A DNA stretch of 64,000 nucleotides from Octopus bimaculoides (Eukaryota): NCBI RefSeq assembly GCF_001194135.2, contig NC_068995.1, positions 14,806,037-14,870,036 on the forward strand, written 5' to 3'. Shown here in pieces: positions 1,017 through 50,261 of this stretch; the first letter of the stretch is position 1; the number at the start of each line of letters is the position of its first letter. The notes below the pieces were generated by a model. It did no database searches, had not been told where the DNA came from, and saw only the letters and a list, made by a program, of their open reading frames with translations. The translations under genes and the position numbers were made by a program.

Positions 1017-1278
1017 TCAGTTATCCTTTTTGCTGTTCAAAAGGTATTTGGCCTCTTCTTTCGTTGCTGCAAATACCTTGGATTCGATGTTATTTATCAC
1101 AACAGCATTCCACATGCAGATAACTAGGAAGACAGCTAGAAGAGCCATCAATAGATTCCTGAAAGTGTCGACAAATGTCCCTCCTAAACTGAAGCAATTC
1201 ATTAAGAAGAGGACGACAGTACTCAATATTGCCAAAAAAATCCAAATTATTCTGTCTGAAGACAACTTGGATGCATTN
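1017..1278 (-). CDS. SMPD2: Copy 1 exon 8 (last, 5' part in gap): two TM helices, ends NSKKDN*
   Basis: NASKLSSDRIIWIFLAILSTVVLFLM...EEAKYLLNSKKDN, TGA at 1019-1017; homologous to copy 2 last exon. Confidence 0.85.
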
Positions 1279-48400: not shown

Positions 48401-50261
48401 TGATGGATACCTCTTATGTGTTTAAATGTACACTGTATTTATATGAAGAAAAATATGTAGTTTATGGACTAAATCTAATATTTCTATTACCCTTCGATAT
48501 TATTGATTATATATATATATATATGTATATTTGATGAGATTCTTACAGTTCCAGTCCACCAAATCCACTGACAAGACTTAGGTTGGCCCGAGGTTACAGC
48601 AGAAGACACTAGCCCAAGGTATCACGCAGTGGAACTGAGCCGGAAACCATATAGTTGAGAAGCAAACTTCTTGTCACACAGCCACGCTCACGCCTGTCTA
48701 ACTGTTTTTTTGTTTTTTTTTTCGGTTCACGTTGGAAAAAGCACTGTGGTTCCCAACTTGAAGGTACGCCTATACAAAAGTAAATACTGACTAGGGGCCT
48801 GTGGGCGGAGTTCGAAAATTGAGTAACCAGACCATTCAAAATCCTGGGGTTCGAAACCACGGACCTATCGTCTTTAAAAAGAACACGTTGAATACTCTGC
48901 GCGTAGGTAAAGGGCCAGGATGGTCAGGGCTAGAATACCTTTGGTCATATGTCGACTAGATCAAGGTTGACCTGGGGTTAAAACAACAACAACAAAAGCA
49001 GTTGAAACGAATCAACGAAGGAGACTACGTAGTCGTCGATACGCTAGAAAATGCAACCAAGACTTTTCAAATCCACAATGTTATTGATTTTAGAGAAATA
49101 GAAAAAAAACGAAGAATATATCACACATAATAATCATGGATATGTGCAGAGATGAGATGACCACGGCTGGAACGCCTCTGATCACAAGTCAAATCGATCA
49201 AGGTTGATCTGGGGCTGAAAACAACAACAACCCGCTATTTAAAGATTCCGAACCAACGAAGAGCGCCTCTACGTCATCGATCGAGACGCTAGAAATAACA
49301 GTGAAATCTCTTCGAATCGCTCCCAACCACCATTTTTCAAAAAGGCATTTTGGATATAATCATGGATATACAAAAAAAAAAAAAAAATTCATGGGATGGT
49401 CACGGTTAGAAATGCTTTTAATCATATGCCAGCCGGATAAATGCTAATGTACTGCTAAACAAAACAAACACAATAGTTGAAATGAAAATTGGATCAGCTG
49501 TTGTTTTCTCTTCTTTTCGTATCAATGAAATGTTGATGTATGACTAGAAATGTCTAACTGGGGTTGCTGGCAGCAATAATAAATACATTTACGTCAACAT
49601 AGTTAAGCTAACACGGATTCAAGCCTCTGCGTAGTTGTACAGCGTCAGAAAAATAGCAGCCAAATCTTCCTTAAATCATACCCTATTATATTTAAAAGGA
49701 AGTGCACACTGCATTATGAAGTCTAAACAAGTTTAAACAATAACAAAAAGATTTTTTTAAATAGATGACCACGGCTGGAACGGCTTTGATCAGAGATCAT
49801 ATGTTCTACTCTTAGATCAGTAACTAACCAGGACAACGTCCGATTGCTGAAAATAGCAGTCAAATCTTCCTTAAGACACAATCAGCTGTCTTAAACACAG
49901 AACACGGTGTATATATCAAAAATAATAATATAGTTCCTGGTGAACGGAAAGATAGGATCATCACGGTTGGAACGTATTTGATCATAAATCCAGCTAGTTT
50001 AGTTACTTGGAAGTAAACAAACTGTTAATATGGTCTGTTTCATTGCCATGATGAATCAAAATCAAAAGCACACACACACACATATACACACGTAGACGAA
50101 AAAAATAGTCTCTTTTTCAAATTATTTAACTGATTCAATTATTAACTGATAAAATATTTAATTATAAATAATAGGTTATCAAAATACATTTTTTTAATAA
50201 GTATAAATAAATGAACGAATATTTACCAGCAATTTAAAGTGAGAATTCTGAGTGAAAACAT
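30123..50261 (-). CDS. SMPD2: Neutral sphingomyelinase 1 (SMPD2-like), paralog copy 2; exon 4 not visible
   Basis: Exons 50261-50227, 45482-45380, 42170-42094, [exon 4 unseen], 36713-36510, 34561-34432, 32002-31684 (gapped), 30457-30123. Same exon sizes and phases as copy 1; no stops in visible exons. Confidence 0.87.
31215..31530 (+). mobile_element. Same RTE relic at the equivalent position in copy 2 intron 7, with a ~0.8 kb internal deletion
   Basis: Aligns to ~2880-2982 and then jumps to ~3780-3960. Confidence 0.8.
31684..32002 (-). CDS. SMPD2: Copy 2 exon 7 (mostly N gap): GTKVTVDHYERVFGKIP...PT
   Basis: ttttag acceptor ends at 32003, gtgaga donor starts at 31683; the SDH motif would lie in the gap. 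Confidence 0.85.
34432..34561 (-). CDS. SMPD2: Copy 2 exon 6: KNIVDDKLGNTCECPDNSYT...RIDYLLFRANS
   Basis: 130 bp, same junctions as copy 1. Confidence 0.92.
35925..36100 (+). mobile_element. Penelope-like terminal fragment
   Basis: Carries a minimal hammerhead-like motif and is flanked by microsatellites. Confidence 0.55.
35973..36009 (+). ncRNA. Minimal type I hammerhead-ribozyme-like motif (variant core CUGUUGA)
   Basis: UCUUU-CUGUUGA-A-GAGC(gua)GCUC-GAAAC-GUC-AAAGA: stem I, stem II and a GUC site are all present. Confidence 0.55.
36510..36713 (-). CDS. SMPD2: Copy 2 exon 5: IHAEYSDVNDEY...GGDCN...NDAWLKK
   Basis: 204 bp; 63/68 aa identical to copy 1. Confidence 0.93.
37290..37575 (-). 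mobile_element. RLE-type (R4/NeSL-like) non-LTR retrotransposon endonuclease fragment
   Basis: WYKHKLEGVTENNEYKILWDF...*RPDIVI...IIDIAISGD. Confidence 0.8.
38590..38900 (+). mobile_element. RLE-type non-LTR retrotransposon 3' end
   Basis: KYKDLEIEIQKIWHLKARTVPLIVSTLGMIK...EI*KIVLTSSAHILRK. Confidence 0.8.
39215..39680 (+). mobile_element. Third interspersed repeat family (representative)
   Basis: taccaggcagtggctctcatgg...gagcagaagtagt; relatives at ~10375, 12775, 33085(-), 43430(-), 46055(-). Confidence 0.75.
41185..41423 (+). mobile_element. Probable RTE LINE C-terminus with two C2H2-like fingers
   Basis: TCHCGF...GLAIHSRKH and CSICPTICK..AGLKRYICVH*; no splice context. Confidence 0.5.
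42094..42170 (-). CDS. SMPD2: Copy 2 exon 3: IWCISDFEHLKSVISNKLPHSHYFHS
   Basis: 77 bp, ttgtag acceptor, gtaagg donor. Confidence 0.9.
44145..44234. repeat. 17-bp minisatellite (GTCATGGTCTTGACTTT) x5.3
   Basis: Five perfect units read directly. Confidence 0.95.
44760..45180 (+). mobile_element. tRNA-derived SINE, main family (representative copy)
   Basis: A box tggctgtgtgg, B box ggttcagt(t/c)cc, internal (TA/TG)n. Other copies near 20-575, 5960-6350(-), 8860, 27675-28130, 29075, 34705(-), 35040-35440, 40235-40650, 48540(-), 52195(-), 62195. Confidence 0.85.
45380..45482 (-). CDS. SMPD2: Copy 2 exon 2: (W)GIPFPVICKDKNFRVKSLAKALSESEYDIILLQE
   Basis: 103 bp; retains the canonical WGIP. Confidence 0.9.
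48209..48435. mobile_element. Fold-back MITE (TA-CAGTG...CACTG-TA) in copy 2 intron 1
   Basis: ~96 bp arms, inner 47 bp perfect. Confidence 0.85.
50227..50261 (-). CDS. SMPD2: Copy 2 exon 1: MFSLRILTLNC(W)
   Basis: ATG at 50261, TG|gtaaat donor. Confidence 0.88.

Follow-up and report, generated by a model that had tools for sequence, protein, structure and literature searches.

Human has a single SMPD2 gene, whereas one stretch of the Octopus bimaculoides genome carries a tandem pair of genes of this neutral sphingomyelinase type. Are the two genes genuine paralogues, when did they arise, and have both been kept? We addressed these questions in a 64-kb stretch of the short-read O. bimaculoides assembly (the window; G+C 37.5%, 12 runs of N) and in the corresponding loci of other octopods. 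We put at about 85% the probability that the genes are tandem SMPD2-type paralogues that were duplicated in the Octopus lineage and are both under constraint, with copy 1 being the derived member and parts of the pair having been homogenised by gene conversion. A full-text literature search for neutral sphingomyelinase together with octopus returned no paper describing the pair, which the automated annotations of O. sinensis and O. vulgaris already contain without comment.

The genes are arranged head to tail on the minus strand, with copy 2 (50261-30123) upstream, copy 1 (17215-1017) downstream and a spacer of 12.9 kb between them. Their first exons lie 33,046 nucleotides (nt) apart (50261 versus 17215) and their stop codons 29,106 nt apart (30123 versus 1017), in agreement with a reading made from the sequence alone (the sequence-only reading), which had proposed a same-strand pair separated by 29-33 kb. 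Exons were located with a tblastn probe of human SMPD2, which served this purpose only, and every exon boundary was then read directly from the sequence along sphingomyelinase-like frames on the minus strand. All readable exons of both copies have AG/GT boundaries, and their lengths and phases are equal between copies. A colinear chain of blastn self-matches joins 768-18566 to 28789-50680 at 72-96% identity, and the identical phases and homologous introns and flanks of the sequence-only reading are borne out by measurement. Its count of eight exons per gene stands for copy 1; copy 2 shows seven, with exon 4 (184 nt) being unreadable. No stop codon or frameshift was found in any readable exon of either copy. 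Divergence between the copies is 4-28% in DNA and ~20% in protein, and a four-residue motif near the N-terminus, taken directly from the exons, reads WAFP for copy 1 but WGIP for copy 2, as had been noticed. The two blocks and their exons are as follows.

768-18566, minus strand: duplicated block 1, holding copy 1 (WAFP-type, downstream); blastn chain to 28789-50680.
17181-17215, minus strand: copy 1 exon 1, 35 nt, MFSLKILTLNCW; ATG at 17215, GT donor.
14200-14302, minus strand: copy 1 exon 2, 103 nt, (W)AFPFPWMCKDKEF...LLQE, carrying the Mg-binding Glu; AG/GT.
12334-12410, minus strand: copy 1 exon 3, 77 nt; AG/GT.
10029-10212, minus strand: copy 1 exon 4, 184 nt, with the HGDWFAGK (DK) loop, ending at the catalytic His (ITH); AG/GT.
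7837-8040, minus strand: copy 1 exon 5, 204 nt, IHAEY...GGDCN...; AG/GT.
5322-5451, minus strand: copy 1 exon 6, 130 nt, ...GIRIDYLLFRANS; AG/GT.
4127-4293, minus strand: copy 1 exon 7, true length 120 nt by its orthologues; cut by gap 4179-4282, with SDHEGV from 4178.
1017-1277, minus strand: copy 1 exon 8, last 261 of 335 nt and stop, two hydrophobic helices; first 74 nt in gap 1278-1978.
28789-50680, minus strand: duplicated block 2, holding copy 2 (WGIP-type, upstream); blastn chain to block 1.
50227-50261, minus strand: copy 2 exon 1, MFSLRILTLNCW; boundaries read.
45380-45482, minus strand: copy 2 exon 2, (W)GIPFPVICKDKNF...LLQE; AG/GT.
42094-42170, minus strand: copy 2 exon 3; AG/GT.
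37753-38552, minus strand: copy 2 exon 4, most likely hidden in an 800-N gap; predicted start ~12 nt inside the high-coordinate edge.
36510-36713, minus strand: copy 2 exon 5, GGDCN; AG/GT.
34432-34561, minus strand: copy 2 exon 6, ...GKRIDYLLFRANS; AG/GT.
31684-32002, minus strand: copy 2 exon 7, with the SDH codons inside the gap; cut by gap 31691-31951.
30123-30457, minus strand: copy 2 exon 8, complete at 335 nt with stop, two hydrophobic helices; boundaries read.

What kind of enzyme would these genes encode? Among solved structures, copy 1 best matches human SMPD2 (8j2f, E=3e-69, residues 8-284); bacterial beta-haemolysin comes next at ~2e-5. Copy 1 exons 1-6 score 65.2 bits on Pfam PF03372 (Exo_endo_phos, cut-off 24.5). 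The copy 2 fragment, exons 5-7a with half of the domain unreadable, scores 22 bits, just below the cut-off, and PF03372 is present in full-length copy-2-type orthologues. The 245-amino-acid (aa) copy 1 protein was used as query in an orthologue search, which gave 73 database homologues bearing the names putative neutral sphingomyelinase or SMPD2; they come from molluscs, a brachiopod, an annelid, insects, nematodes and fish.

In human SMPD2, N15, E49 and D178 are Mg2+ ligands, H136, H272 and D238 act in catalysis, the D111-K116 loop is also key, and W17, W51 and I19 take part in substrate binding (PMC10682184). Numbering residues by the 8j2f alignment and PMC10682184, we found the equivalents of N15, W17, E49, W51, D111, W112, F113, K116, H136, D178, N180, D238, D271 and H272 conserved wherever they are readable. 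The three Mg2+ ligands are present in both window copies. The equivalents of H136, H272, D238 and the D111-K116 loop are all present in copy 1 and in copy-2-type orthologues; in copy 2 itself D238 alone is readable and the rest fall in gaps. The motifs LNCW, QE (in LLQE), GDCN (in GGDCN) and RIDY occur in both copies, and SDH (in SDHE) is readable in copy 1 only, from 4178, just as the sequence-only reading had listed them. Exon 8 of each copy further encodes two hydrophobic 19-residue windows with Kyte-Doolittle means of 2.4-2.9, a measure of hydropathy only. The pair is thus predicted to encode SMPD2 (nSMase1)-type Mg2+-dependent phosphodiesterases, with a DNase-I-like (EEP) domain and two C-terminal membrane helices.

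The likeness to human SMPD2 (8j2f; PMC10682184) extends over the whole DNase-I-like domain, which aligns end to end, the key residues and the two C-terminal hydrophobic helices. Identity, however, is only ~40%: the octopod proteins have Cys for L179 (GDCN versus GDLN), Gln for E48 and a two-residue insertion after WGIP, and in copy 1 Ala-Phe replaces G18-I19. The GDCN motif had been singled out as a departure from the usual GDLN. It is indeed present in both copies, but across the family the third position of GDxN is L in 50 sequences, F in 12, C in 7, M in 4 and Y in 1, with Cys in all 7 octopod sequences including Argonauta. GDCN is therefore an octopod-wide trait at a variable, non-catalytic position and no special feature of the duplicated pair. 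We also considered an SMPD3 (nSMase2) or bacterial sphingomyelinase type. These enzymes, including sphingomyelinase C and beta-haemolysin, have the EEP superfamily fold and the catalytic residues Glu, Asp, Asn and His in common with the octopus proteins; however, beta-haemolysin is far less similar to them (E ~2e-5, central region only), and the SMPD2-type C-terminal two-helix anchor is absent from all of these enzymes. This assignment was rejected on the 8j2f match (3e-69 versus ~2e-5) and on the homologues being named SMPD2.

When did the duplication take place? In O. vulgaris, CAI9733690 is of the WAFP type and CAI9733689 of the WGIP type, and both are encoded on the same chromosome (OX597828.1). 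Copy 1 is 92-93% identical to its WAFP-type orthologues (92% to CAI9733690), and copy 2 matches the WGIP type. The O. vulgaris locus, gap-free over 95.6 kb, carries the WGIP gene upstream of the WAFP gene on a shared strand, with 13 kb between them; the O. sinensis locus, gap-free over 87.8 kb (CM016874.1:54990644-55078407), has the same layout with a 14-kb spacer. In both species the genes have eight exons of 35/103/77/184/204/130/120/335 nt and encode 395 aa. These genes (CAI9733689 and CAI9733690 in O. vulgaris, isoforms X1-X4 in O. sinensis) are direct orthologues of the window genes, agreeing with them in exon lengths, order, strand and spacer; they differ in lying in gap-free assemblies, where all eight exons are seen for both genes. 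Informative sites in a four-gene codon alignment follow gene type at 53 positions, species at 9 and another pattern at 3.

Argonauta hians provides an outgroup to both paralogue clades. Its gene (GAB1605173) resembles the Octopus genes in having eight exons of the same lengths, 395 aa, GDCN and WGIP. It differs in being the one gene seen there, in a compact 13.7 kb, within a 33.7-kb locus in which no second copy was found within 10 kb on either side, and in falling outside the clade formed by the two copies. In neighbour-joining trees with 500 bootstrap replicates, with support counted as bipartitions, the whole protein recovered the copy 1 clade at 99.8%, the copy 2 clade at 100%, and the two together without Argonauta at 100%; this last grouping retained 99.8% on the exons free of conversion (1-4 and 6). 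Because the Argonauta gene lies outside this clade, the duplication is placed in the Octopus lineage, before the three species split. The data indicate a tandem duplication of an eight-exon ancestor after the Argonauta split and before the divergence of O. bimaculoides, O. vulgaris and O. sinensis, and the lineage-specific duplication suggested by the sequence-only reading holds. It is common to at least three Octopus species and thus not private to the O. bimaculoides genome. A 397-aa homologue assembled from Logan transcript contigs (P0007/P0078; GDFN, WSIP) is sister to the octopod genes with 99.8% bootstrap support and probably comes from another cephalopod.

Have both copies been maintained? 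Comparison of O. bimaculoides with O. vulgaris orthologues gives a ratio of nonsynonymous to synonymous substitution (dN/dS) of 0.29 in copy 1 and of 0.22 in copy 2, the latter lower than in any other pair, at dS of 0.17-0.20. These ratios, together with the intact readable exons, indicate purifying selection on both copies; as far as sequence can tell, both have been retained and look functional, as had been anticipated.

The two copies have not changed equally. With Argonauta used to assign direction, 22 of the 46 fixed type-specific amino-acid differences are changes in copy 1 and 9 are changes in copy 2, the other 15 giving no direction. A Tajima relative-rate test in O. vulgaris gave 33 unique changes in the copy 1 type versus 17 in the copy 2 type (chi-squared = 5.1), and the nonsynonymous branch lengths (dN) are 0.076 and 0.033, respectively. 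Branch-specific dN/dS estimates with Argonauta as outgroup were discarded, as dS exceeded 1.2 (saturated) and some branch estimates were negative; the dN partition and pairwise values were kept. Taken together, the comparisons point to copy 1 as the more derived gene, with about twice as many amino-acid changes, and to copy 2 as remaining near the ancestral sequence.

The changes in copy 1 include WAFP, that is, G to A and I to F at the equivalents of human G18 and I19, and among the key residues that can be read, I19 is the sole position not conserved. Among 76 homologues, Ala-Phe is found at these positions in the three copy-1-type proteins only, and Phe at the I19 position occurs nowhere else. 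In human SMPD2, I19 stabilises the acyl chain of sphingomyelin, and the I19A mutant has ~20% activity and a Michaelis constant raised from 3.0 to 15.5 uM (PMC10682184). Given this contact, the substrate preference or kinetics of copy 1 are likely altered. Copy 1 would most likely be an active enzyme with a somewhat changed preference for its lipid substrate or changed kinetics, and copy 2 would most likely have kept the ancestral role.

The identity between the copies is a mosaic, ranging from ~73% around exon 6 to 94% along intron 7 and in the region of exon 5. Two tracts stand out.

2555-4133, minus strand: conversion tract, exon 7 3' end and intron 7; pairs with 30899-31690 at 94% identity.
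7773-8103, minus strand: tract homogenised around exon 5; partner segment 36446-36777, 94% identity.

Within the first tract, copy 1 has a 790-nt insertion at 2987-3778. Over 785 nt of intron 7, the O. bimaculoides paralogues are 94.3% identical to each other and 88-90% identical to their orthologues. In introns 1, 2 and 6 and in exons 2, 4 and 6, by contrast, orthologues are closer than paralogues, which is not so in exon 5. Sites that follow species are concentrated in exon 5 and, within exon 8, in its 5' half. Exon 5 has four of them, at exon positions 84-192, versus three type-pattern sites, and a tree of exons 5 and 7 did not recover the paralogue clades. Paralogue dS varies by exon from 0.08 (exons 5 and 7) to 0.88 (exon 6), the most divergent exon between paralogues. 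By identity, exons 2 (88%) and 6 (74%) set the two copies apart most clearly. These patterns argue for interlocus gene conversion that has acted repeatedly on two regions, one around exon 5 and the other running from exon 7 through intron 7 into the 5' part of exon 8, and conversion between the copies accounts for the mosaic of 72-96% identity. The oldest divergence between the paralogues is preserved in exon 6 and intron 6.

Sequence also seems to have moved between the copies in another form.

42815-43768, no strand assigned: inverted piece, ~0.95 kb, of copy 1 intron 2 (12599-13999), inside copy 2 intron 2.

This block is 95-96% identical to O. bimaculoides copy 1 and ~90% to O. vulgaris copy 1, it is absent from the copy-2-type intron 2 of O. 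vulgaris, and it lies within one contig with no adjoining gap. It looks like an inverted transfer from paralogue to paralogue specific to the O. bimaculoides lineage.

On this evidence, an ancestral eight-exon gene was duplicated in tandem in the Octopus lineage after the Argonauta split. Both copies have since been held by purifying selection, keeping their readable catalytic, metal-binding and DK-loop residues. Copy 1 has gained about twice as many changes, including G to A and I to F, with copy 2 staying near the ancestor, and gene conversion has repeatedly homogenised parts of the pair. In kind, this is a tandem duplication of the ordinary lineage-specific sort, in which the copies have diverged unequally and undergone gene conversion.

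Several points weigh against this interpretation. The single copy in Argonauta is known from one annotated protein and a 33.7-kb locus, and the trees are distance-based. In O. bimaculoides, the case for function is made from sequence; exon 4 and the SDH codons of copy 2 and parts of copy 1 exons 7 and 8 are unreadable, and their intactness is deduced from orthologues and from the consistency of the frame. The functional meaning of WAFP is extrapolated from a human alanine mutant, and Ala-Leu and Ala-Ile occupy the G18-I19 positions in a few other species, indicating that the site tolerates change.

Existing annotations describe the pair in different ways. In O. sinensis, NCBI merges it into one gene with isoforms X1-X4 (XP_029646397, XP_029646512, XP_036366034 and XP_036366035). 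The merging arises from isoform X3 (XP_036366034), which spans both genes: it starts with the copy-2-type exon 1 of the upstream gene (MFSLRIL, locus position 2001) and continues with the copy-1-type exons 2-8 of the downstream gene (from 69461), skipping ~67 kb. In our reading, these four isoforms of one gene are two genes and a read-through model. The O. vulgaris protein CAI9733690 (372 aa) omits 23 exon 6 residues including RIDY. The genome has the full 130-nt exon with AG/GT boundaries (merged position 82975-83104), and the omission probably reflects either an error in the model or a less used alternative donor. For O. bimaculoides, the UniRef copy 2 model (P0001, window 30123-36713), to which coding pieces of the window are 100% identical, is 149 aa long and is pieced together from exon 5, exon 6 and an interior portion of exon 8, with exon 7 skipped; it is an annotation artefact arising from assembly gaps. 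No O. bimaculoides copy 1 model turned up in the protein collection that was searched.

The X3 model and the substitutions of copy 1 can be combined into a bolder proposal, in which copy 1 would be a neofunctionalised, octopus-specific sphingomyelinase, with a remodelled acyl-chain pocket, a rewritten exon 6 surface and a different lipid or partner, and in which the pair would form one transcription unit as in X3. We regard this combination as unlikely. The one-unit idea can also be taken by itself, as NCBI annotates O. sinensis: an upstream promoter and exon 1 would be spliced to either body, with exons 2-8 of each copy serving as cassettes. X3 does mix exons of the two types and shares its start with X1, and in O. 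bimaculoides a transposon remnant lies close to the start of copy 1, with no counterpart at the matching place upstream of copy 2.

17433-18353, plus strand: Mos1-type mariner remnant, 218 nt upstream of the copy 1 ATG; Pfam HTH_48, 71 bits; matches 59214-60500.

However, in all three species both copies start with an ATG-bearing exon 1 of their own, the donor of which is conserved, and O. sinensis X2 uses exon 1 of copy 1. X3 itself is a computed Gnomon model, and read-through chimeras of tandem duplicates are common and often minor products. A single transcription unit thus seems quite improbable to us.

If one copy were instead a decaying pseudogene, the candidate would be copy 2, whose exon 4 is found nowhere in the readable window (skipping its 184 nt would shift the frame) and whose sole existing O. 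bimaculoides protein model is the 149-aa fragment. Both observations have to be read against the assembly gaps.

4179-4282: gap inside copy 1 exon 7; flanks frame-consistent, 57 nt missing by orthologues.
31691-31951: gap inside copy 2 exon 7; flanks frame-consistent, ~62 nt missing.
1278-1978: gap that takes the first 74 nt of copy 1 exon 8.
37753-38552: gap of 800 N at the site expected for copy 2 exon 4.
7531-7772 and 9664-9733: intronic gaps.
25313-25322: gap of 10 N, intergenic; flanks (25217-25394) overlap by 96 nt.
29768-30106: gap just 3' of the copy 2 stop, outside coding sequence; identical 53-nt flanks, 29715-29767 = 30107-30159.

A search for copy 2 exon 4 across the window (blastn with word size 7, relaxed tblastn) matched only copy 1 exon 4. 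The segment 39009-38553 nevertheless aligns at 89% to the copy-2-type intron 3 of O. vulgaris and ends at the gap edge, 12 nt before exon 4 is due. Since the alignment continues up to the gap edge, exon 4 is most likely hidden within the 800-N gap rather than deleted. The gaps likewise account for the 149-aa model. Moreover, the seven readable exons of copy 2 are intact in frame and splice sites, its counterparts in O. vulgaris and O. sinensis each encode an intact 395-aa protein, and at 0.22 the dN/dS between copy 2 and its orthologue is below that of every other pair. Decay of copy 2 is therefore very unlikely.

The idea that the pair is an assembly artefact, whether two haplotypes of one locus left uncollapsed or a scaffold segment of it duplicated in error, can draw on a short-read assembly with 12 gaps in 64 kb, at least two of them overlap artefacts, and on gaps at homologous exons in both copies, but it is virtually eliminated by the distance between the copies (4-28% in DNA, ~20% in protein, 46 fixed type-specific residues), by orthologues being closer than paralogues in exons 2, 4 and 6 and introns 1, 2 and 6, and by each type having a separate orthologue, with order and orientation preserved, in the gap-free O. 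vulgaris and O. sinensis assemblies, a layout that excludes the uncollapsed haplotypes against which the sequence-only reading had asked to be checked.

The gaps that break exon 7 in both copies fall within the tract of 94% identity, and failure of a short-read assembler on near-identical paralogous sequence probably explains the breaks at the same exons. The gaps at 29768-30106, 25313-25322 and 61411-61420 are overlap artefacts, with no sequence missing at 29768-30106; the last of the three is a 10-N gap (region 61378-61429) with ~33 nt identical on both sides.

Repeats are found next to the exons and throughout the window. A trinucleotide microsatellite, (GCT/ACT)n, follows directly after the exon 6 donor in both copies (5280-5321 and 34390-34431), and another, (ATT/ATC)n, directly precedes the copy 1 exon 4 acceptor (10213-10300); such exon-abutting trinucleotide microsatellites are the cause of the long low-complexity open reading frames in the window. 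A second Mos1-type mariner remnant (HTH_48) lies at 59214-60500, and an open reading frame in the spacer (20980-21681, plus strand, 233 aa) has a DDE_1 transposase domain of pogo/Tigger type (E=3e-18). A dispersed repeat family, with members of ~200-400 nt at 72-92% identity and in both orientations, occurs throughout the introns and spacers and is probably a SINE-like (short interspersed nuclear element-like) element. Examples are listed below.

2-598, 2328-2497, 5949-6354, 8857-9099, 27665-27988, 35031-35441, 40235-40653, 44738-45190, 48509-48687, 52161-52371, 62189-62390: dispersed repeat examples.

What does the pair mean for octopus biology? It touches no open question of long standing. 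Its practical value is a correction to the O. bimaculoides annotation, in which copy 2 is represented by a 149-aa fragment and for which a copy 1 model was not found in the protein collection. It also provides a clean, datable tandem duplication in cephalopod lipid metabolism, with a conservative and a derived copy and clear interlocus gene conversion between them, and with the derived copy substituted at a residue for which experiments on human SMPD2 have shown an effect on substrate binding.

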